From assembly GCF_001194135.2 (NCBI RefSeq), contig NC_068993.1, forward strand, positions 53,532,017 through 53,596,016: DNA of 64,000 bases, in the 5' to 3' direction. Shown one piece after another: positions 2,455 through 63,723 of the stretch (the stretch's first letter is position 1; each line of letters starts with the position of its first letter). This DNA is from Octopus bimaculoides. Its lineage: Eukaryota. The notes beneath the pieces were generated by a model, which saw only the letters and a list, made by a program, of their open reading frames with translations, had not been told where the DNA came from and did no database searches. The translations under genes were made by a program, and so were the position numbers.

Positions 2455-2541
2455 AGATCTGGCGTAGTAGTTAAAAGCGCAGGCTACTAACCTCAAGATT
2501 CCAAGTTCGATTCCAGGCAGTAATCTGAATAATAATAATAA
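2455..2541 (+). mobile_element. Family E tRNA-like head alone, ending in (AAT)n
   Basis: TGGCGTAGTAGTTAAAAGCGCAGGCTACTAACC...AAGTTCGATTCCAGGCAGTAATCTGAATAATAATAAT aligns with 5778-5870. Confidence 0.75.
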
Positions 2542-2777
2542 AAATATTATTAATGTGCTTTCAACGTTCCACTGGCACAAGTGCCAATCAAGCGGTAGTG
2601 TGATTGGCCACGTCACATACAAATAAATGCAAAGACAGGCATACATTCATAGGGATATGCAGAAATGAACTCGTCCCCATACTCACTTGAAGACAGTGGA
2701 TTTTATTTTATGATGAGCAAAATTTTTTTATTTTATGATTAGTAAACACTCAGATGTTGTAATTCTTTATTTTGCAG

Positions 2778-4534: not shown

Positions 4535-5682
4535 TTCCTGTCTTACGAATCGTCCGTCATTGGCTCCCTTTAGCTGTTCACAGCGGTTGTTGATGCATTA
4601 ACAACCTCGATATTGTTAATCCTCCCTCCCCATCCTACTGCCCACCTTTTCTGTTATTGATTAGCTGAGTAACGACCTCCAGAGTAAGTCATCAATCACA
4701 CTGGTTTGCTGAGGAACAACCCATGACGATTGTGGAACAAATTTGGCAGAACCGGTAGAGCTTCAGACAAAACAGTCTTGTGGTATTTAGTTATGGGCCT
4801 TTATGTTCTGTGTTCAAATCCCTTGAAGACCAACTTTGCCTTTCGTCCTTCCAGGGTCTGATAAAATAAAGTACAACTTAAGATCTGGGTTCCGTTTAAT
4901 TAATTATTTACCCTTCCACAAAATTTCTGGCCTTTTGTCTATACTAGAAATTATCAATTAATTAATTGATTAAAATAATTATTTTGATTTCGTGTACGAT
5001 TTAGGAATGGTTTACTGTGTACTATAGCTTCATCAATACTCTGTCATTGGAAAAGATGTTCATGATAGATTAATTATACATTCTAGAAAGATCTCACATG
5101 CCTATGGTATTTCATCTTCCTCACATTTCTAATTTTGTGCGCGCTAGCATATACACACACACACACACACACACACATGCATACATACGTACATACATCG
5201 GTGCATGCATAGTTGTGTCTAAATGTGCGTCAATACATGTATAAATTCACAAGTGTATGTATATCACACACACACACACACACATAATTATATCCATATG
5301 TACACAAATTCATAGTTGTTTTACATATATATATATATAATATGTATGTATGTATATCAACACACACACATACACACTTATATGCATACACATGCATACA
5401 TACATGTATACATCAACACAAGGCTGTGATAAGAGCTGTCTGTATGGTCCACTTTCCATGGAACTTCAGAGGGAAGAGATTCAGTGTGAACTAGTTAGGA
5501 GTTGGGGGGGGGGATATTGGGTTTTCTTCCATCAATTAGCAGCAGCAGCAGTAGTAGTAGAATTTGTCATTGTTACTACTCAAAATAGTGTCTTGTGATA
5601 GAAAGCAGGTTAGTCATCAGATTTAGTGGCAGAGAATGAGGATTTTGGTCCTCAGATGAAATGTTTTGGAGTAAATTAAGGA

Positions 5683-6027
5683 ATTCAGTTCTATATTTGA
5701 GAGATGAGGAATTATGTACATTATTTACATTTGACAGATATTTGTCTTGATCCTGTTTGTTGTTAACCACGGGCATATGGTGCAGTGGTTAAGAGCGCAG
5801 ACTACTAATTCCAAGATTCCGAGTTCGATTCCAGGTAGTGACCTGAATAATAATAGTAATAGTAATAATAATAATAATAATAATGACATTGGGAAAATAC
5901 CTTAGGAGTGAGAGCCAAGGTTCAAAATTTCCCCAGAACACCTGATGAAGGCTGGAGGGTATATCAGCTGAAACATTGTGTTAACAACAAAAAAGATGAG
6001 GACAAATATCCGTCAAATGTAAATAAT
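5683..6027 (+). mobile_element. Composite non-autonomous element (family E), copy 1: inverted tail + tRNA-like head + (AAT)n + hammerhead motif + tail
   Basis: A-box TGGTGCAGTGG 5778-5788; B-box GTTCGATTCC 5823-5832; CTGATGA..GAAAC core 5942-5974; 51-bp inverted arms 5717-5767/5980-6030; 12-bp direct repeat GTAAATTAAGGA at 5671-5682 and 6028-6039. Confidence 0.85.
5937..5982 (+). ncRNA. Minimal type I hammerhead ribozyme-like motif (degenerate copy)
   Basis: AACAC-CTGATGA-A-GGCTG-(10 nt)-CAGCT-GAAAC-ATT-GTGTT; stem I AACAC/GTGTT perfect; stem II GGCTG/CAGCT; stem III G mutated to A. Confidence 0.7.
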
Positions 6028-6034
6028 GTAAATT

Positions 6035-6310
6035 AAGGAGTTTAGTCATTAATTGGTGAGAGTACTGGGAAGTGTAGTCATAAAACGAAGTAGTGCAGTT
6101 AGTAGTCTTGTCATCAGATGAAGTGATGGGAGTACCAAGGAGTTTAGCCATGAAACAAAGTAAGTATTAGGGAGTTTAGTTGTTAAATGAAGAGATGGAA
6201 GCACTTGGGGAATTTAGTTATGAGTTGAGGTGGTGGGGATTCTAGGAAGATTATTCATTGGATGAATGACTTGAGTAATAGGGAGTTTAATATGATGGAA
6301 GAAAGAGTTG
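6035..6310. repeat. Degenerate ~38-40 bp minisatellite
   Basis: Recurrent (G/A)AGTAY..GGGAGTTTAGT..T.AA units; similar sequence at ~5590-5680. Confidence 0.6.
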
Positions 6311-6524: not shown

Positions 6525-6900
6525 GCTTACCAACCACATGGTTCCGGGTTCAGTCCCACTGCGTGGCACCTTGGGCAAGAGTCTTCTACTATAGCCTCGG
6601 GCTGACCAGAGCCTTGTGAGTGGATTTGGTAGATGGAAACTGAAAGAAGCCCAGCATGGAAAACAGATGTTAAATGATGATGATGATGATAGATATATGT
6701 ATGTGTGTGTGTCCCAACATCGCTTGACAGCCAGTGCTGTTTACATCCCCGTAACTTAGAGGTTTGGTAAAAGAGACTGATAGAATAAGTACTAGGCTTA
6801 CAAAGAATAAGTCCTGGGGGGTCGATTTGCTCGACTAAAGGCAGTGCTCCAACATGGCCGCAGTCAAAATGACTGAAACAAGTAAAAGAATAAAAGAATA
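6525..6900 (+). mobile_element. SINE family B (5' truncated)
   Basis: CCAACCACATGGTTCCGGGTTCAGTCCCACTGCGTGGCACCTTGGGCAAG..ATGGCCGCAGTCAAAATGACTGAAACAAGTAAAAGAAT. Confidence 0.85.
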
Positions 6901-7012
6901 TATGTGTGTGTGTGTGTGTGTTATTAATATCACCTAAAGAAGGGATTTCTTTTCCACTCACCAAAGTGAATGGAGTTCTGGCCAAGTGGAATTTATGTCA
7001 TCAGACCATACC

Positions 7013-12675: not shown

Positions 12676-13355
12676 AAGGCGGCGAGCTGGCAGAATCGTT
12701 AGCACGCCGGGCGAAATGCTTAGCGGCATTTCGTCTGTCTACGTTCTGAGTTCAAATTCCGCCGAGGTCGACTTTGCCTTTCATCCTTTCGGGGATCGAT
12801 AAATTAAGTACCAGTTGAGTATTGAAGTCGATCTAATCGACTGGTCCCTTCCCCCAAATTTCGGGACTTGTACCTAGAGTAAAACAGATTATTAAGGTAT
12901 TGAAAAGCCAGGCAGCTGTCAGAACTGTTACTACGTTGGACCACAAGCTCAGCGGCATTTTGTCAGTCGCTATGTCCTGAGTTCAAATTTCACCGAGGTC
13001 AACTTTGCCTTTCATCCTTTCGGGGTCGATAAAATAAGTACCAGCTGAGCATTAGGGTCGATGTAATCGACTTAGCCCCTCCCTCCAAACTGCTGGCCTC
13101 GTGCCAAAATTTGAAACCAATATTAACACGCTGAGTAATGCAGCAAGCTGGCAGAATCGTTTGTATGCCGGATAAAATACTCAGCGACAATTCTTCCGTC
13201 TTTACGTTCTGAGTTCAAATTTCGCCGAGATCAATTTTGTCTTTTATCCTTTCGGGGTCGATGAAATAAGTACCAGTTGAGCACTGGGGTCATTGTAATC
13301 GACTTATCCCCTGCCCACAAAAATGCTGGCCTTGTACCAAAATTTGAAACCAATA
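12676..13355 (+). mobile_element. Three tandem head-to-tail SINE family A copies
   Basis: Units at ~12676-12890, ~12895-13125, ~13135-13355, each with B-box GAGTTCAAAT and central CATCCTTTCGGG block. Confidence 0.9.
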
Positions 13356-14374
13356 TTACTGCGTTTCGCGACATGACATTAAACGCTTTGATTTTGCTGC
13401 CAAGATGATGTCCTTGTATTTTTCTTCTTAATCACTCTGGCTCAATAGAAAGAAATCCGTTAATGCTCTGATCTTGTTCAATGTTTTATGATCTTAGGCT
13501 TCTCATCTGCTTCTGTGTTCTTAAGTAAAGATCAAAACCAAAGTACTTCTTCACACTTTTAGAATCAACCTGTAAAACACCCAAAACAGTCTGTAGATTA
13601 GTCACACTTTAGCTCCAAATCTACCTGATCGGGTAGATTTAGTGCCACGACTACCTAAATATTGGTTGTAGGAAATAATGTTAAGTATTTCATTTAATAT
13701 CGTATGCCTATAAAGTAACAACAGCGATGACGGTGGCGGCGGCGACCTGCACCACCATTACTACAAAATCAACAACTCCAGTGCCATCACACCTTCAGTA
13801 TCTCCACTAGTGCCCCTAACAACCCGATCAAAACCGTCACCAGTAATAACAAAATCGACAATAATATTTACTTGTAATCTCTGACCCCTTCTTTCTCTTT
13901 CTTTCTCCCTTCTTGACTTCCCCTCGTCTCTCTCTTCTTCGTGCCTTTTCTTTTATTTCTCCCTTTTATATCACCTTCTCTTTCAAGGTAAATAGCAACG
14001 TTATGTCTCAAAATATTCAGTTCACAGAAGAGAAGTAAGTTGTATTTTATCTGCGATATTATTATAGCGTCTTAGGTTAATGCAGTGGAGAACTTAGCAA
14101 CGGTTAGGAACTTAGTGCCGTAGAGATTACAATGATTCTAAACACTGATTCCTTTTGATAGAATAACGATGATTACATTGAGTGCAAATGTAATCTGGAA
14201 CTTTATGAAAATGGCGATGTGTTTGAACATGATGCAAAAGTCAAGTGGTGCAATGTTTATAAATAGGAGAGAACTTCTCAGAACACATTTCGGCAGGAAT
14301 TACCACCAGACCGTGGAAGACTTTCTACAATACACTCGCATTTTTCAATCAATTCTCAGCCAAGCTGAATAACT

Positions 14375-14625: not shown

Positions 14626-14840
14626 GAGGTAGCGAGCTAACGGAATGGTTAGCACGCAGGCCAAAATGCTTAGCGGCATTTCGTCCGTCATTACGTTCTG
14701 GGTTCAAGTTCCACCGAGGTCGACTTTACGTTTCATCCTTTCGAGGGTCGATAAAATAAGTACCAGTGGAGTACTGGGGTCAATATAATCGACTACCCAT
14801 TCCCACAAAATTTCAGGTCCTGTGCCTAGAGTAGAAAAGA
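14626..14840 (+). mobile_element. SINE family A in tubulin intron 1
   Basis: GGTAGCGAGCTAACGGAAT..GGTTCAAGTTCCACCGAGGTCGAC..TGTGCCTAGAGTAGAAAAG. Confidence 0.85.
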
Positions 14841-14844
14841 TTAT

Positions 14845-15125
14845 TTCATCGATCTCAAAGGAATGACAGGCAAAATTAAACTCGGCGGGATTTAAACACA
14901 GAGTCTAAAAAAATCAGATCAAATACCGCAAGTTATTTTGTTCAGTACTCTAACGATACTGTCATACTACAGCCTTTAATTGTTTCTAACATAACCATTA
15001 GACCCTAAAATTTTGTGGGGAAGGGTTAGTCAATTAAATTGATCCTCAGAACATGCCTGGTACTTTATTTTATCGACCACAAAACAAGGAAAAAGCAAAG
15101 TCGACCTCAGCCTGCCAGCTCACTT
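14845..15125 (-). mobile_element. Two partial SINE family A copies, antisense
   Basis: Reverse-complement family blocks at ~14845-14990 and ~14995-15125 (GGTAC..TTTTATCGAC; AAAGTCGACCTC; CTGCCAGCTC). Confidence 0.65.
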
Positions 15126-22100: not shown

Positions 22101-22449
22101 GACACAACAAAGAAAGAGATTTGCCGGAATAAATGTTCGTGCTTGCTTGTAAAATGAAGAAAAAAATACAAACTAATATGGAAACATCTCTGTGAATGGC
22201 CTGAAGTCTATTTATACGTTAGAGAAACCGGCAAATCAGCTGTATGTCTTTATGGAGTAATGTGGACAAACCCAATTAAATCTACGAGGGTAGATTAGTG
22301 TCATTCCATTGTCCTTAATAAGGATATCCTCCTAATTAATTATTTCTTAACTTGGGTTGGCATATATTTGTTACGCTTTCACCAACGTATATAAGCTTAA
22401 CTGATCTAGGGATTGAACTGCCGTCCACAAACTAACAAAATTCTATTCA

Positions 22450-22652
22450 ACTTTAAGCACAAGGCCCGAAACGTTTGGGAAGGGGGGGGGAATCGATTAG
22501 ATCGACCGCAGTACACAACTGGTACTTAATTTATCAACCCCGAAAGGATGAAAGGCAAAGTGGACCTTTGCGGAATTTGAACTCAGAATGTAAAGATAGC
22601 CGAAATACCGCTAAGCATTACGCCCTGCATGCTAACGACTCTGCCAGCTCGC
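22450..22652 (-). mobile_element. SINE family A
   Basis: GCACAAGGCCCGAAA..GGTACTTAATTTATCAACCCCGAAAGGATGAAAGG..GAATTTGAACTCAGAA..CTGCCAGCTCGC. Confidence 0.85.
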
Positions 22653-34102: not shown

Positions 34103-35080
34103 NNNNNNNNNNNNNNNNNNNNNNNNNNNNNNNNNNNNNNNNNNNNNNNNNNNNNNNNNNNNNNNNNNNNNNNNNNNNNNNNNNNNNNNNNNNNNNNNNN
34201 NNNNNNNNNNNNNNNNNNNNNNNNNNNNNNNNNNNNNNNNNNNNNNNNNNNNNNNNNNNNNNNNNNNNNNNNNNNNNNNNNNNNNNNNNNNNNNNNNNNN
34301 NNNNNNNNNNNNNNNNNNNNNNNNNNNNNNNNNNNNNNNNNNNNNNNNNNNNNNNNNNNNNNNNNNNNNNNNNNNNNNNNNNNNNNNNNNNNNNNNNNNN
34401 NNNNNNNNNNNNNNNNNNNNNNNNNNNNNNNNNNNNNNNNNNNNNNNNNNNNNNNNNNNNNNNNNNNNNNNNNNNNNNNNNNNNNNNNNNNNNNNNNNNN
34501 NNNNNNNNNNNNNNNNNNNNNNNNNNNNNNNNNNNNNNNNNNNNNNNNNNNNNNNNNNNNNNNNNNNNNNNNNNNNNNNNNNNNNNNNNNNNNNNNNNNN
34601 NNNNNNNNNNNNNNNNNNNNNNNNNNNNNNNNNNNNNNNNNNNNNNNNNNNNNNNNNNNNNNNNNNNNNNNNNNNNNNNNNNNNNNNNNNNNNNNNNNNN
34701 NNNNNNNNNNNNNNNNNNNNNNNNNNNNNNNNNNNNNNNNNNNNNNNNNNNNNNNNNNNNNNNNNNNNNNNNNNNNNNNNNNNNNNNNNNNNNNNNNNNN
34801 NNNNNNNNNNNNNNNNNNNNNNNNNNNNNNNNNNNNNNNNNNNNNNNNNNNNNNNNNNNNNNNNNNNNNNNNNNNNNNNNNNNNNNNNNNNNNNNNNNNN
34901 NNNNNNNNNNNNNNNNNNNNNNNNNNNNNNNNNNNNNNNNNNNNNNNNNNNNNNNNNNNNNNNNNNNNNNNNNNNNNNNNNNNNNNNNNNNNNNNNNNNN
35001 NNNNNNNNNNNNNNNNNNNNNNNNNNNNNNNNNNNNNNNNNNNNNNNNNNNNNNNNNNNNNNNNNNNNNNNNNNNNNNNN
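34103..35080. other. Assembly gap (largest of ~15)
   Basis: Other N runs: 941-973, 9069-9591, 23267-23652, 25703-25961, 27167-27176, 38162-38278, 40114-40450, 42549-43164, 44859-45349, 45923-46261, 48251-48342, 51742-52084, 56379-56541, 57673-58128. Confidence 0.99.
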
Positions 35081-37643: not shown

Positions 37644-37976
<333 letters not shown>

Positions 37977-40523: not shown

Positions 40524-40766
<243 letters not shown>

Positions 40767-43339: not shown

Positions 43340-43590
43340 TCGGGCCTTGTGCCTAGAGTAGAAAAGAATATTTTGAAGGGCCAGCTGGCAGAATCGTTAG
43401 CATGCCGGACAAAATGCTTAGCGGCATTTCATCCATCTTTACGCTCTGAGTTCAAATTCCGCCGCGGTTGACTCTGCCTTTCATTCTTTCAGCGTCGATA
43501 AAACAAGTACCAGTTGTGTACTAGGGCTGATGTAATCGATTTACTCCTTCCCACGAAATTGCTGATTTTGTACCAAAATTTGAAATCAAT
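43205..43590 (+). mobile_element. Two tandem SINE family A copies (first carries an (AC)n expansion)
   Basis: CGCCGAGGTCGACTTTGCC..(AC)n..GGCCTTGTGCCTAGAGTAGAAAAG, then GCTGGCAGAATCGTTAGC..CCAAAATTTGAAATC. Confidence 0.8.
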
Positions 43591-53245: not shown

Positions 53246-53337
53246 GTGGTTTTGGAACAAATTTCAGAACTCTCACCTGTGGTCTACGACATATACGTCT
53301 ACAATATATATATAGATATTCTATAATTATATATATA

Positions 53338-53497
53338 GGCGCAGGAGTGGCTGTGTGACAAGTAGCTTGCTAACCAGCCACATGGTTCCGGGTTCAGTCC
53401 TACTGCGTGGCACCTTGGGCGAATGTCTTCTACTATAGCCTCGGGTCGACCAAAGCCTTGTGAGTAGATTTGGTATATGGAAACTGAAAGAAGCCCA

Positions 53498-53549
<52 letters not shown>

Positions 53550-53750
53550 TTCTGTGTCCGTGTTTGTCCCCTACAATCGCTTGACAACCGATGCTGCTGT
53601 TTACTTCCTCGTAACTTACCGGTTCGGCAAAAGAACCGATAGAATAAGTACGAGGCTTATAAAGAATAAGTCCTGAAGTTGATTTGTTCAACTAAAGGCG
53701 GTGCACCAGCATGGCCGCAGTCAAATGATTGGAACAAGTAAAATAATAAA
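53338..53750 (+). mobile_element. tRNA-headed CORE-like SINE family B, full length, with internal (TG)n
   Basis: GGCGCAGGAGTGGCTGTGTG..GGTTCAGTCC..GTGGCACCTTGGGCGAATG (cf. CORE/MIR GTGACCTTGGGCAAG)..(TG)n..CAGCATGGCCGCAGTCAAATGA..AATAAAAGAAT. Confidence 0.85.
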
Positions 53751-54000: not shown

Positions 54001-56078
54001 TACAATGAAGCTAATATTAAAAGCTTCTTTACCTTGTCTACTTCTTTTTGGCCTAGTCCCACTTTATTTCATTCGTCTTTCTCTCCCCTTCTCTCTTATT
54101 TTATTTTATCAATTTTTCTCTTTCTCCCTCTAACTCACGCACACATTTCTTATTTTCATTCATAATAATTTTATATCTCTCTTTCATTTAGAAGGTTCTT
54201 CTCTCTCTCTACTTCCGTCTTTCAGCTGCCCTATCGCATCGATAATTTCCACCGTTCACGCTTTCTTTCTCTATCTCTTGTATCCTCCTCCATCTTTCTT
54301 CTATATCAGCCCCACTTCCTCCTCCATCTGCCATCGTTCTCATTAGTACAACAGTAGTGATGAAGCAGGACAGATTAACACTGACACATAAATATTTACA
54401 TATCATAAAATACCGATCAACTTTGCCTCAAACCTGTCAGATCTGATGAAATACAACCGCTTCCTTTTCCGGTAACTCTCCCCTCTGGGTCCGTTATCTC
54501 TCTCTTAAATGCTGCGTTCAATCACCCATCAGAAAAGATAGGGGCTTATATTGTTGGCGATAGTAATGGTGATTTTGTTGATTGTGATGTTGATAATGGT
54601 AGGAATGCTACTTGTAACAGATGATAGATATGTTGATGATAGTGGTGGTGGTGGTCCCGATGATGGTAATGGTGATGATGTTCACGGTGATGGTGGTGGT
54701 GGTACTGCTGAGAATGATAATGATAGTAATGATGATGATGGCTGTAGTGGTAGCAGTATGGTAGTGATGGTAGCGTGCGGTGTTGATGGACGCAGTGGCT
54801 GATTGGTGGGGTGGTGGTTGTTTTGATGATTGTGGAGGGTGGTAGGATCTTAAGATTCTTGCTGTGTAGTCTCCAAGCCAGCCTTATTAGAGCAAACAAC
54901 ATTTATGACAATTTCAACCCAATGTTTAGGTGCGATGTAAAATTTTATCGGATGAAAGGCAAAAGTTTTGGCATATTAACTTTTAGGCTTTAAAAACAGG
55001 ATCCTCTCCCTTCCGTGTAATACAAAAATTTCGTTTGTCTGACCTTATCAGAGTTACGTCCCTTGCTTATTTTGAGTGAGTTTTTACCTACTGATAGCAA
55101 TGTTAAACTCAGATAATTAACTGGAGCTTTACAACTCACTGTATTATATGTGTGATTATCTCGGATATGTAGAAGGCACCTATGGAGATTTTCCTTCAGC
55201 CATGTTATTGGATCGAAAAGCTTTCTGTTGTTGATATTGCTGTTGAGTAGTCCAAATGAAGTGAAGATTATGCAGGCGCATAATCTCCACTTCGCTGTGG
55301 GGGTTCGAGAGGAGGCAAGTTCCATGGCTGCCTCCTCGGACAACACACATTATAGTTACGACACTGCTGGTGGGGACAGTGAACTGAAGATTGAGCCAAA
55401 GCGTGACCAACGAATAGGTTAGCGTGACTGAGGCCCATCTTAGTTCCCATTGTAATCCCAGTGAATCTATTGATAGATAGCTTTCTCTGGAAATGGAGAA
55501 ACGGTTAAGGATGAGAGATAGAATAATAACATGCCCGGAGTAATTTTCTATGAATACTAGAAAAACGTACACAACATTAGTCATCTATTAATATTGATTT
55601 TTTTCCTCAACACATGATACAGCTTTGCTAACGCAGCGAGTATTAAATGTGCTTGCATTAATTTACGTTGAAAACAAACTTTTATTTCAATGATTAAAAC
55701 AAGTCAGGACAATGAAGATCAGCTCAGTTATTGAAAGCCAACGGTTTTTCAGAAAACAGCTGGAAACATAAGGCTACTAATGAGCGATATAAATATTTAA
55801 TATTTTTTCTGTTTAACCTATGTTAATGTTTTATAGAACTGGGTATGATCCAGTTAGAGATGGATATTCATAGAAACATCGTTTCACATCGATTCATAAA
55901 TTTTGAACCATTTTTACTATTCTTATATTTCTTCTTTTTTATGCGCAGCCCACACACATAGGCAAGCATACACATATAAACCCACGCACGCATACACAGT
56001 GATGAATGTTTATCAAAATAGGTATATGTTTATGTATACGTATGTATGTTGTGTATATGCGTGCGTGAGAGCGTGTAT

Positions 56079-59649: not shown

Positions 59650-59870
59650 AGGCGGCGAGCTGGCAGACTCGTTAGCACGCCGGACAAAATGCTTAGCAGT
59701 ATTTCATCTGTCGCTAAGTTCTGAGTTCAAATTCCGCCGAGGTCGATTTTGCCTTTCATCCCTTCGGGGTCGATAGATTAAGTACCAGTTACGCACTGGG
59801 ATCGATGTCATCGACTTAATCCCTTGTTTGTCCCCTCTATGTTTAGCCCCTTGTGGACAGTAAAGAAATA
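59650..59870 (+). mobile_element. SINE family A with alternative 3' tail
   Basis: Canonical head and central block, then TCCCTTGTTTGTCCCCTCTATGTTTAGCCCCTTGTGG tail. Confidence 0.85.
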
Positions 59871-61365: not shown

Positions 61366-61758
61366 GATGCTGATGTCTCTAAGGTATGGGCTTGCAGTTG
61401 TTGTGGACAAACCGAGATAAAAGAGAGAGAGAGAGAGAGAGAGAGAATGGTGAGGAGAGACGAAAAGTTTACGAAGCTGATTAAGACACATACCCATCGT
61501 TTCTTTTAATGAGATGAAATACATAATGTCGTGATAAGCGTCTAAAGAAGCCAATGTTAGGAAGCACAGAACAACACTATTATTTTCACACAGATCACAA
61601 GTTGATAATATTATATACAAGTATCACACGACACTGTTCTCTTAGATGCGGGAGCGGCTATCTAACAATGAAATTATGTATGAAGATTTATGAGTTAGAA
61701 TTGTCTTGGTAGCCATGTTGGTCTATAAAAGATGACGTATTCAGGCTTACATATATGT

Positions 61759-62069
61759 ACATTATTTACCCTTGACGTATATTTGTCCTCATCTTGTTTG
61801 TTGTTAACGCAACGTTTCGGCTGATATACCTCCAGACTTCATCAGATGTCTTGGAGAAATTTCGAACCTGGGTTCTCATTCCTAAGGTATTTTTCGATGT
61901 TATTACTATTATTATTATTTAGGTCACTGCTTGGAATCGAACTCGGAATTTTGGGGTTAGCAGTCCGCGCTGTTAACCACTATGCCATATGACCGTGGGC
62001 ATATTTACGTCAAATGTAAATAGTGTAAATAATGTACATAACTCCTCATCTCTTGAATATAGAACTGTA
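61759..62069 (-). mobile_element. Family E composite element, copy 2
   Basis: Same module order on the minus strand; flanks TTACATATATGT 61747-61758 and TTACGTATATGT 62070-62081 (12-bp TSD, one transition). Confidence 0.85.
61806..61850 (-). ncRNA. Minimal type I hammerhead ribozyme-like motif (degenerate copy)
   Basis: Minus strand GACAT-CTGATGA-A-GTCTG-(9 nt)-CAGCC-GAAAC-GTT-GCGTT; core and palindromic AACGTT intact; one mismatch each in stems I and II. Confidence 0.7.
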
Positions 62070-62370
62070 TTACGTATATGTTTCAAACCATTTATAGGTA
62101 TGATTCTGCGGCCCGAATTAAATAAATGCCTTTGTTTACCGTATTTGCCTTCATCGTCCTTATCACGTTCTGAGCTGAAAACTCACGCATTTATATTTTG
62201 CCTTTCGCCGCACCGAGGTCGACGGGATAAAGTCCAGGTGCGTCGTAGGATCGATCTAGCAGGCTACGTCTCTCATCTTAGATTGTGTGGTCTTGGTTCA
62301 ATGCAAGAAATATTTTTGTGGATATGCAGAAGGAATATATAATTCTATGTTCACAGGGCACCGGGCTTAC

Positions 62371-63435: not shown

Positions 63436-63723
<288 letters not shown>

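Follow-up and report, generated by a model that had tools for sequence, protein, structure and literature searches.

Two copies of a short non-coding unit, and one further element related to its head, lie in the window, which is the whole 64-kb stretch of DNA analysed here. The unit measures 312-348 bp and occupies two unrelated loci, each with its own flanking duplication. Copy 1 (5683-6030, plus strand) has the following anatomy:

5671-5682, no strand assigned: left target-site duplication, GTAAATTAAGGA, 12/12 identical to 6028-6039
5683-5767, minus strand: inverted, 5'-truncated partial copy of the element's own 3' end, 85 nt
5683-5716, minus strand: 34-nt "tail" extension, absent from the direct copy and kept in copy 2 at a different locus
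5717-5767, minus strand: mirror of the direct tail within the inverted segment
5768-5843, plus strand: start of the direct copy, with the 3-nt leader CAC and a tRNA-like head (head 5771-5843)
5778-5788, plus strand: A box, TGGTGCAGTGG
5822-5832, plus strand: B box, AGTTCGATTCC
5846-5884, plus strand: internal (AAT)13 microsatellite (Tandem Repeats Finder, period 3, 13 copies)
5885-5936, plus strand: short body from the (AAT)n to the hammerhead motif, alignable with copy 2
5937-5982, plus strand: minimal type I hammerhead-like motif (descriptor scans; helices I and II present in the minimum free energy fold)
5937-5941 and 5978-5982, plus strand: helix I
5942-5948, plus strand: CUGAUGA, followed by an extra A at 5949
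5950-5955 and 5964-5969, plus strand: helix II
5970-5973, plus strand: GAAA, followed by C15.2 (5974), A at 16.2 (5975), U16.1 (5976) and U17 (5977)
5980-6030, plus strand: 3' tail of the direct copy, ending ...AATGTA
5994-6002, plus strand: 5' arm of a hairpin, AGATGAGGA, within the tail
6028-6039, no strand assigned: right target-site duplication, its first 3 nt (GTA) common to the tail

Copy 2 (61758-62069) lies on the minus strand between different flanks, and its direct copy is read from high to low coordinates:

62070-62080, no strand assigned: duplication on the element's 5' side, TTACGTATATG on the plus strand
62000-62069, plus strand: inverted, 5'-truncated partial copy, 70 nt
62037-62069, plus strand: 33-nt tail extension, part of the inverted segment
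61922-61999, minus strand: leader CCCAC (61995-61999) and tRNA-like head
61988-61994 and 61922-61929, minus strand: acceptor strands GGTCATA and CAGTGACC
61977-61987, minus strand: A box
61933-61943, minus strand: B box
61900-61921, minus strand: short (AAT)n-like stretch
61851-61899, minus strand: short body from the (AAT)n-like stretch to the hammerhead motif, aligning with the copy 1 body
61806-61850, minus strand: minimal hammerhead-like motif
61758-61808, minus strand: 3' tail of the direct copy, ending ...AATGTA
61747-61757, no strand assigned: duplication on the element's 3' side, TTACATATATG on the plus strand

The related element has a head only:

2457-2554, plus strand: tRNA-like head and (AAT)n, with neither hammerhead nor tail module

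The two copies are 76% identical over 352 nt (61755-62071 in copy 2), and at 24% divergence from one another they are old. The first-pass annotation had claimed that the architecture of copy 1 recurs 56 kb away, and this is borne out by copy 2, which shares the non-tRNA 5' segment and has flanking repeats of its own; these 11-bp duplications match at 10/11 positions, the sole mismatch (ACG vs ACA) being a CpG transition. The (AAT)n and hammerhead-like string that it described are present to within a few bases, and its report that the 5' segment of copy 1 is the reverse complement of the element's own tail is likewise correct, with arms at 5714-5767 and 5980-6033 that span 54 nt and are 89% complementary. 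The corresponding inverted repeats of copy 2 are 61754-61788 with 61997-62031 and 61754-61772 with 62022-62040. The 12-bp direct repeats reported around copy 1 are exact, and a 12/12 match at one fixed register has a chance of ~1e-7, but 3 nt are shared with the tail. Because each repeat opens with bases that could equally belong to the element's tail, the edges of the duplications are ambiguous by 3-4 nt, and their lengths are 9-12 bp for copy 1 and 7-11 bp for copy 2. Across 90-98 nt, the head-only relative shares 82% identity with the heads of both copies, and its existence fits a modular origin of the unit. A BLAST search within the 64-kb window recovered only copies 1 and 2 and this one head-only relative, with no further copy of the tail, and the body of neither copy matched an Rfam family. 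The window also contains beta-tubulin exons, whose best matches reach only 96% identity and are spread over many phyla, and its richness in SINEs and microsatellites may suggest a cephalopod genome.

For the head, the consensus of the internal Pol III promoter is TRGCNNAGTGG for the A box and GGTTCGANTCC for the B box, and each box of copy 1 matches it at 10/11 positions. Both boxes are kept in all three aligned heads, and the acceptor stem of copy 2 retains complementarity (GGTCA/TGACC). Formal tools give the tRNA-like head little support: ARAGORN made 0 tRNA calls with default parameters, and the Rfam tRNA model had no match over the whole window or at E<=10 on either locus. At 80% thresholds, ARAGORN placed a 74-nt cloverleaf (Ala|Ser) exactly on the head of copy 2, and on copy 2 only. 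Both direct copies start with CCACGG, 11 nt before the A box and 3-5 nt before the tRNA-like +1, and the sense strand of either copy lacks TTTT; the shared 5' start and the absence of such a run agree with Pol III transcripts, and from these motifs we infer that the element may be transcribed by Pol III. The leader of copy 1 would be CCAC if C5767 were counted, a base that also closes the inverted arm.

The hammerhead-like motif of copy 1 reads AACAC-CTGATGA-A-GGCTGG-AGGGTATA-TCAGCT-GAAA-CAT-T-GTGTT, with cleavage predicted after 5977, and that of copy 2 reads GACAU-CUGAUGA-A-GUCUGG-loop-UCAGCC-GAAA-CGU-U-GCGUU. Copy 2 has a palindromic helix III (ACGU) and the G10.1-C11.1 pair, with a single mismatch in each of helices I and II, and the defects of copy 1 are G10.1-U11.1 and a non-palindromic ACAU, both of which CpG decay could explain. 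A relaxed minimal-hammerhead descriptor, specifying both 5-bp helices with no more than one mismatch in each, matched only these two sites in the window and 0/300 Markov-simulated windows. The Rfam hammerhead models had no match at the gathering threshold over the whole window or at E<=10 at both loci, an outcome that would be expected for a minimal variant without helix III; the remaining Rfam matches in the window and at both loci were chance lncRNA, CRISPR and snoRNA hits (E >0.5). In neither copy does the hammerhead segment fold with unusual stability (z -1.3 and +0.8), and a CpG-restored version adopts helices I and II in a structure close to the minimum free energy. The complete minimal hammerhead proposed earlier from a consensus of the two copies is defensible, since three of the differences represent CpG decay in copy 1, but it takes the better base at each site and is not an observed sequence. 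All core bases (CUGAUGA and GAAA, 11/11) are intact in both copies, although by our estimate ~9% of neutral cases at 24% divergence would match this, and with only two old copies, 24% apart, neither conservation nor covariation is demonstrable.

Some details of the motif resemble those of Penelope-like elements (PLEs). In the minimal hammerheads of PLEs, helix I has 4-5 bp and helix II 6-8 bp, an additional base separates positions 9 and 10.1, positions 10.1 and 11.1 form a G-C pair, and 15.2-16.2 is palindromic (PMC4209133). An extra A lies between 9 and 10.1 in both copies; it had been described as a base that a hammerhead can tolerate, and it is in fact a listed hallmark of the PLE form (PMC4209133). 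Both inserted copies carry sequence on either side of the predicted cleavage site, implying that their templates were uncleaved RNA, and since both sides are retained, the hammerhead is most likely a carried-over part of a PLE recognition module and not a required processing step. Mutants of the anole PLE hammerhead still insert in vitro (PMC11167929).

The scars of insertion also point to PLEs. Previous work has established that PLE insertions have an inverted 5'-truncated copy at the 5' end and a tail of 30-40 bp at one end only (PMC8557442), and the published signature also includes a duplication of variable length. In vitro, a PLE protein cleaves and extends both strands, with reverse transcription beginning at two internal positions, and the stretch between these constitutes the "tail"; the first start site is in a stem-loop ~85-92 nt 3' of the hammerhead cut (PMC11167929). 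In both insertions reported here, a conserved extension of 31-34 nt (CATAAYTCCTCATCTCTYRAATATAGAACTG plus 2-3 nt) sits on the inverted copy alone. The element's tail reads GTTAACAACAAACAAGATGAGGAC...AATGTA, and the direct copies both stop at this ...AATGTA, whereas the inverted copies both run 31-34 nt beyond it with the same sequence. A 9-bp hairpin, AGAUGAGGA/UCCUCAUCU, has its 3' arm inside the extension, and the direct copy ends inside its loop; the fold is predicted in both copies (z -2.3 and -1.7). The inverted segment directly adjoins the 5' end of the direct copy at both loci and differs in length (85 vs 70 nt), and this combination of a common direct-copy start with inverted segments of unequal length would be expected if the RNA had a fixed 5' end and the second cDNA aborted at varying points. 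The element lacks a 3' poly(A) tract and a 3' LINE-type microsatellite. Neither locus contains a direct tandem or pseudo-LTR of the unit, and Tandem Repeats Finder detected no array of unit length; this counts against a PLE origin in that the tandem (pseudo-LTR) layout is the one most often seen in PLEs, although the literature describes it as frequent and not obligatory. The copy 1 extension is identical to the right flank at 16/34 positions, a level that ~1% of random 34-mers equal, and this resemblance was rejected as copy 2 shows none.

A partner with coding capacity was sought at one place in the window, an RT-looking ORF fragment (55271-55504, minus strand). This fragment and its neighbourhood (~54.3-55.6 kb, three frames) matched no Pfam family at E<=1, and no coding remnant of a reverse transcriptase (RT) or GIY-YIG endonuclease was detected in this one RT-looking minus-strand stretch. 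No autonomous PLE with the same 3' module was found in this stretch or in the protein and DNA searches described below, and the partner is deduced from the scars only. The earlier proposal that the element borrows PLE machinery instead of that of a LINE gains strength from the inverted copy and the 31-34 nt extension, but this missing autonomous partner counts against it. A six-frame translation of both copies, concatenated, had no match among 5.8 billion proteins, and an exact look-up of the ORF overlapping copy 2 returned no record. DNA pattern scans gave 0 and 1 matches in JGI metagenomes and 0 in IMG/VR; the single JGI match (L001) has the 23-nt pattern and nothing else in common with the element and was treated as chance.

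Taken together, the unit is probably a composite SINE in which a Pol III head of tRNA origin, carrying an (AAT)n remnant, has been fused to a PLE 3' module and which was inserted in trans by a PLE RT and GIY-YIG endonuclease. The PLE-derived module would comprise the minimal hammerhead, the 9-bp hairpin and the tail. Its insertion can be pictured in six steps, all of which we infer. Pol III would start 3-5 nt upstream of the tRNA-like +1 and, with no TTTT to meet, pass through the element into flanking DNA. The PLE protein would then bind the hairpin and tail, immediately 3' of the hammerhead in the RNA, and its endonuclease would cut both strands of an AT-rich target 7-12 bp apart. Each 3'-OH would serve as primer for reverse transcription from one of two internal positions in the RNA, the first after ...AAUGUA in the hairpin loop and the second 31-34 nt downstream. 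The cDNA from the first site would reach the 5' end of the RNA and give the full direct copy, and that from the second would abort after 70-85 nt and give the inverted partial copy that carries the "tail". The two cDNAs would finally be joined head to head, with gap repair producing the target-site duplication. The core of the original reading, a tRNA-headed non-autonomous retroposon inserted by Penelope-type machinery, is strengthened by these observations, and that reading as a whole is partly supported.

Other histories could be proposed for the same structure. The element might instead be a non-autonomous PLE derivative in which the tRNA-like part is a captured SINE fragment and transcription depends on an upstream or Pol II promoter. 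The degenerate tRNA-like region, for which formal tools make no call, would suit such a passenger, and the separate head and (AAT)n element at 2457-2554 would have been available for capture. PLEs are also able to retrotranspose host sequences in trans (PMC8557442). However, the A and B boxes are kept in three heads with no internal TTTT, and the direct copies share a start base, 3-5 nt ahead of the tRNA-like +1, upstream of which neither carries template sequence. A start at that distance is the one expected for a Pol III type 2 promoter, and we consider capture of a passenger head unlikely.

It is more doubtful that the hammerhead is active, as a dimer or with the aid of a protein, and that a cleaved and circularised RNA is the intermediate of transposition, as in a retrozyme. 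The intact CUGAUGA and GAAA of both copies, the palindromic ACGU in helix III of copy 2 and the formation of helices I and II by the CpG-restored sequence at close to its minimum free energy are all compatible with this, as is the proposal that animal retrozymes are PLE dependants. However, neither locus has a tandem repeat, and the copies run from tRNA leader to tail without permutation around the cleavage site, so their templates would have been linear and uncleaved. Retrozymes, moreover, bear canonical and not minimal hammerheads (PMC7229834), and the insertion of anole PLE hammerhead mutants (PMC11167929) also speaks against a circular intermediate, which we regard as improbable.

We find it improbable, too, that the unit is an ordinary LINE-mobilised tRNA SINE, with an inverted segment arising from twin priming or a second insertion nearby and a hammerhead arising by chance, even though SINEs normally depend on LINEs, the window is rich in another tRNA-derived SINE family and the Rfam models miss the hammerhead. 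In twin priming, the inverted segment derives from RNA lying upstream of the direct one, and the 3' end is neither duplicated nor extended, whereas the inverted piece here repeats the tail and adds 31-34 nt. The identical arrangement occurs at two loci, exactly abutting and within one duplication each; the 3' end has neither poly(A) nor a LINE-type microsatellite, and the motif, found in none of the 300 simulated windows, includes the PLE-specific extra base. Finally, a DNA transposon origin, for example a Mutator-like MITE with terminal inverted repeats of ~50 bp, a duplication of 9-12 bp and a SINE fragment aboard, is scarcely credible despite the 54-nt inverted repeat (89%) and the 11-12 bp flanking duplication, as the left arm is not terminal but has 31-34 nt of conserved sequence outside it while the right arm is terminal, and as the two copies differ in where that left arm ends internally, in a manner that fits 5' truncation and not a fixed terminal repeat.

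The composite SINE reading would have implications beyond this locus. SINEs are in practice defined as dependants of LINEs, and PLEs constitute a third class of retrotransposon, on which only tandem retrozymes or deleted PLE copies are known to depend. A tRNA-promoted element bearing PLE scars would widen the SINE concept to a new class of partner, and tentatively, it may be the first recognised SINE family partnered by a PLE and not a LINE, in which a Pol III transcript has acquired the minimal cis-module of a PLE (hammerhead, stem-loop and tail) and insertions record both start sites and dual-strand priming in vivo. If this is true, the element provides PLE retrotransposition with a natural "minimal template", and PLEs join LINEs in supporting Pol III-driven parasites. 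Recognition by the PLE RT could also be mapped on it as a small natural substrate of ~100 nt, made up of hammerhead, 9-bp hairpin and tail, and its insertions would independently mirror a mechanism of two start sites and both strands that has so far been seen only in vitro and for one lizard PLE. The finding bears as well on the thousands of solitary minimal hammerheads in animal genomes, which may be functional ribozymes or carried-over recognition modules; the templates here appear to have been uncleaved. Should the family already be present in Repbase or Dfam as an unclassified SINE, this would be a reclassification and not a discovery. Our search of the open-access literature found no description of a tRNA-headed SINE with a PLE tail, but the original statement that no family like this has been described was too strong, given that Sm-alpha/Sj-alpha (PMC2770079, PMC6765202) and PLE-dependent retrozymes (PMC7229834; bioRxiv 10.64898/2026.07.22.740005) are known.

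With LINE-tailed tRNA SINEs, in the sense of SINEBase, the element shares the modules of head, body and tail, the A and B boxes, a target-site duplication and a reliance on partner enzymes through a common 3' module. It differs from them in that the 3' module and scars are of PLE type, the end has no poly(A) or simple repeat, and there is an extra inverted partial copy. The schistosome elements Sm-alpha and Sj-alpha (Ferbeyre et al. 1998; Laha et al. 2000) are tRNA-derived, Pol III-type, hammerhead-bearing SINE-like elements (PMC2770079, PMC6765202), and they resemble the present unit in being short (~335 bp), tRNA-Gln-like, apparently transcribed by Pol III, non-coding, dispersed and equipped with a type I hammerhead. 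The Sm-alpha hammerhead, however, is canonical, catalytically active and detectable by Rfam-type models. Sm-alpha frequently occurs in tandem, and its cleavage leaves the promoter at the 3' end; the accounts consulted describe no inverted partial copy or tail signature for it, in a comparison that is made by description and across phyla. Animal non-LTR retrozymes (Cervera & de la Pena 2020; Li, Clavereau & Pollet 2026 preprint) have been argued to be non-autonomous PLE derivatives (PMC7229834; bioRxiv 10.64898/2026.07.22.740005), and they too are non-coding, hammerhead-bearing and ~170-400 nt long, with duplications of >4 bp and co-occurrence with PLEs. However, retrozymes are tandem repeats with canonical hammerheads, circular RNAs and no reported tRNA-like promoter, whereas the element described here occurs as single units, its hammerhead-like motif is of the minimal form and its linear 5' end is defined.

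The PLEs themselves (Craig et al. 2021; Frangieh et al. 2024; Cervera & de la Pena 2014) differ from the element in that it has no RT/GIY-YIG reading frame, pseudo-LTR or tandem, totals only ~300 nt and has a tRNA-like Pol III head as its 5' part. For the anole PLE, no homology between target and start site was reported, whereas 3-4 nt of microhomology occur here. The features in common include the inverted 5'-truncated copy abutting the 5' end, the 30-40 nt "tail" at one end only, the variable duplication in AT-rich DNA, the minimal type I hammerhead (here a hammerhead-like motif) with its extra base at 9/10.1 and a palindromic helix III (here in copy 2), and the placement of that motif tens of nucleotides upstream of the region where reverse transcription starts, here a predicted stem-loop.

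Copy 1 and copy 2, two old copies of a short tRNA-headed, hammerhead-bearing mobile element, are 76% identical over an alignment of 352 nt (in-window BLAST), and all the features listed in the first-pass annotation are present. As the copies lie in unrelated flanking sequence, the composite must have moved as one unit. From 5' to 3', it consists of an inverted partial copy, a leader, a tRNA-like region, (AAT)n, a body, a hammerhead-like motif, and a tail. The exact 12-bp repeat enclosing copy 1 has a chance expectation of about 1e-7 per register. As the initial 3-4 bases of each duplication also prolong the element's tail, the true duplication is 9-12 bp for copy 1 and 7-11 bp for copy 2. A tail-like sequence is reportedly recognized by the PLE (Penelope-like element) endonuclease. 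By eye, the flanks of copy 1 (5600-5682 and 6040-6200) resemble a degenerate ~35-bp repeat with units like GGAGTTTAGTCATNAAATGAAG..., and Tandem Repeats Finder called no array in them. The window is a draft animal genome segment (35% G+C; 15 N runs, 5,144 bases together) with a beta-tubulin gene (14375-63723, + strand) split by very long introns, one intron region of which is broken by a 978-N gap (34103-35080). The best database matches of the tubulin reach 96% identity and come from many phyla. Copy 1 lies ~8 kb upstream of exon 1, while copy 2 is antisense to the gene in the last visible intron (40.7-63.4 kb).

Features of the two copies and of the beta-tubulin gene
5683-6030, + strand: copy 1
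5671-5682 and 6028-6039: flanking repeats of copy 1, GTAAATTAAGGA, 12/12 identical
61758-62069, minus strand: copy 2, aligned with copy 1
61747-61757 and 62070-62080: flanking repeats of copy 2, TTACATATATG and TTACGTATATG, single mismatch (ACG vs ACA)
Before the tRNA-like region: leader, 3-5 nt, (C)CAC (copy 1) or CCCAC (copy 2)
5771-5843, + strand: tRNA-like region of copy 1, 73 nt
5778-5788, + strand: A box of copy 1, TGGTGCAGTGG, 10/11 vs consensus
5822-5832, + strand: B box of copy 1, AGTTCGATTCC, 10/11 vs consensus
5846-5884, + strand: (AAT)n of copy 1
Between (AAT)n and the hammerhead-like motif: body, about 50 nt
5937-5982, + strand: hammerhead-like motif of copy 1
6030, + strand: end of the copy 1 tail (...AATGTA)
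About 14375, + strand: beta-tubulin exon 1 (MREIVH...)
About 33835; 37644-37976; 40524-40766; 63436-63723, + strand: further beta-tubulin exons

The non-tRNA 5' segment described in the first-pass annotation is present, but it is not a separate module, as it matches the element's own tail plus an extension. In copy 1, positions 5767 to 5683 read on the opposite strand as GTTAACAACAAACAGGATCAAGACAAATATCTGTCAAATGTAAATAATGTA and then CATAATTCCTCATCTCTCAAATATAGAACTGAAT, which is the copy's own tail followed by 34 more bases missing from the direct copy (the full unit from head to tail), and 5714-5767 pairs with 5980-6033 as an inverted repeat (54 nt, 89%). The inverted piece is 70 nt in copy 2 compared to 85 nt in copy 1, being shorter at its inner end, and the copy 2 extension, CATAACTCCTCATCTCTTGAATATAGAACTGTA, is nearly identical to that of copy 1. 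Because the inverted piece carries the tail and extra bases in both copies, both insertions are head-to-head pairs. One member is full length and ends at a putative reverse transcription start, site 1 (...AATGTA), and the other is inverted, 5'-truncated, and ends 31-34 nt further, at site 2. The copy 1 extension is identical to its own right flank at 16 of 34 positions, a level equalled by about 1% of random 34-mers, and this likeness is taken as chance since copy 2 has no such similarity. JGI metagenome contig Ga0307391_10171038 (658-680) matches the junction pattern of tail and extension, AATGTACATAATTCCTCATCTCT, exactly over 23 nt and shows no similarity outside it, so this match is probably chance as well.

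The tRNA likeness of the head appears genuine, though weak. No tRNA was called in either copy's head by ARAGORN at default settings or by Rfam, and ARAGORN at 80% thresholds returned a 74-nt cloverleaf in copy 2, with an acceptor stem beginning exactly at the assigned +1. A third locus (2457-2554, + strand) shares this head (82% identity with those of copies 1 and 2) and (AAT)n followed by unrelated sequence, with none of the element's 3' module and no clear target-site duplication found there. This suggests that the composite arose by addition of a foreign 3' module to a simple SINE made up of head and (AAT)n, and the element at 2457-2554 is a possible source of the head. The most serious alternative is a PLE-dependent element that is not driven by Pol III, and the evidence bearing on it is indirect: the direct copy has an identical starting point in both copies, 11 nt ahead of the A box, whatever the length of the inverted piece, and TTTT runs are absent from the sense strand of each over 272-297 nt, with several on the antisense strand, as would be expected of full-length cDNAs from a Pol III transcript.

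Another tRNA-derived SINE family, with a length of about 215 bp, greatly outnumbers the element in the window (14632-14845 and some 25 further sites, such as 12682-12893, 13142-13357, 22442-22652, 43380-43560, and 59655-59816; 15-20 overlapping matches per site). It holds ...GGGTCGATAAAATAAGTACCAG..., which presumably resembles a conserved SINE core domain, and has no tail in common with the element studied here. An ORF fragment (55271-55504, minus strand; ...FTGITMGTKMGLSHANLFVGHA...) bears a superficial likeness to a reverse transcriptase motif, and Pfam at E<=1 detected no family in it or in neighboring frames. Repeated stretches (6530-6997 and 53302-53691, both minus strand, and others) translate as ...EAIVEDxCPRCHAVGLNPEPCGW... 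and ...WYLFYRPRKDERQS... in many spurious ORFs and are not genes.

Mobilization by PLE machinery, as proposed in the first-pass annotation, is supported by an insertion signature which that annotation had not recognized, namely, the inverted partial copy and one-sided extension in both insertions. PLE insertions are described as having an inverted, 5'-truncated copy at the 5' end and a 30-40 bp tail at one end only, features reported to be absent from target-primed reverse transcription by LINEs (Craig et al., PMC8557442). In vitro, both strands of the DNA are cut and extended by a PLE protein, with reverse transcription beginning at two internal RNA sites and the tail being the interval between them (Frangieh et al., PMC11167929). 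L1-style twin priming does produce inversions, but of upstream sequence, and it neither duplicates nor overshoots the 3' end. Independent nested insertions would not be expected to abut exactly within a single duplication at both loci. For a retrozyme, a tandem layout or one permuted about the cleavage site would be expected, and the repeats of a MITE would be fixed and truly terminal at both sides. In the element, the tail sequence AGAUGAGGA (5994-6002, copy 1) is complementary to UCCUCAUCU within the extension, and a 9-bp hairpin is predicted in copies 1 and 2 (z of -2.3 and -1.7), with site 1 in its loop. The first start site of the anole PLE, a lizard element used in vitro, also sits in a stem-loop, at a distance of 85-92 nt on the 3' side of the hammerhead cut (PMC11167929). 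In the present element, the corresponding distance from the predicted cut is about 53 nt for site 1 and about 87 nt for site 2.

The hammerhead-like motif reads AACAC CUGAUGA A GGCUGG AGGGUAUA UCAGCU GAAA C A U U GUGUU in copy 1 and GACAU CUGAUGA A GUCUGG AGGUAUA UCAGCC GAAA C G U U GCGUU in copy 2. Both retain all core bases, a helix I of 5 bp and a helix II of 6 bp, each with one mismatch in copy 2, and an additional A between A9 and G10.1. G10.1-C11.1 and a palindromic ACGU occur in copy 2, and G-U and ACAU in copy 1. CpG decay of copy 1 accounts for three 3'-half differences (CCG to CTG, ACG to ACA, GCG to GTG). The CpG-restored AACGC...GCGUU, an inferred form rather than an observed sequence, would be a clean minimal type I hammerhead. 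Such traits are listed by Cervera and de la Pena (PMC4209133) as emerging in the minimal hammerheads of PLEs. Both sides of one helix I pair differ (5940/5979 in copy 1, 61847/61809 in copy 2; A-U in copy 1, G-C when CpG-restored), and these changes, both CpG transitions, may reflect either genuine compensation within a subfamily that is active or decay that struck each side independently. A hammerhead descriptor matched only the two element sites in the window and 0 of 300 simulated windows. Against a functional reading, about 9% of neutral cases are estimated to retain the 11 core bases in two copies. The inserted copies hold sequence from both sides of the cleavage site, indicating uncleaved templates, which fits the continued insertion of anole PLE hammerhead mutants (PMC11167929). 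The motif is present as claimed, but with uncleaved templates, ordinary folding energy (z of -1.3 and +0.8 in copies 1 and 2), and no match to Rfam hammerhead models in the window or at either copy, the case for "ribozyme" function is weaker than originally stated.

The standing of the element depends on genome-wide copies and on a matching autonomous PLE. The claim of novelty is weaker than originally stated. No description of a tRNA-headed SINE with a PLE tail and the inverted-copy signature was found in the open-access full-text literature. Hammerhead-bearing SINE-like elements derived from tRNA have been on record since 1998, Sm-alpha being tRNA-Gln-like and of Pol III type (PMC2770079; PMC6765202). 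Algae have non-autonomous PLEs (PMC8557442), and animal retrozymes are proposed dependants of PLEs (PMC7229834; bioRxiv 10.64898/2026.07.22.740005).
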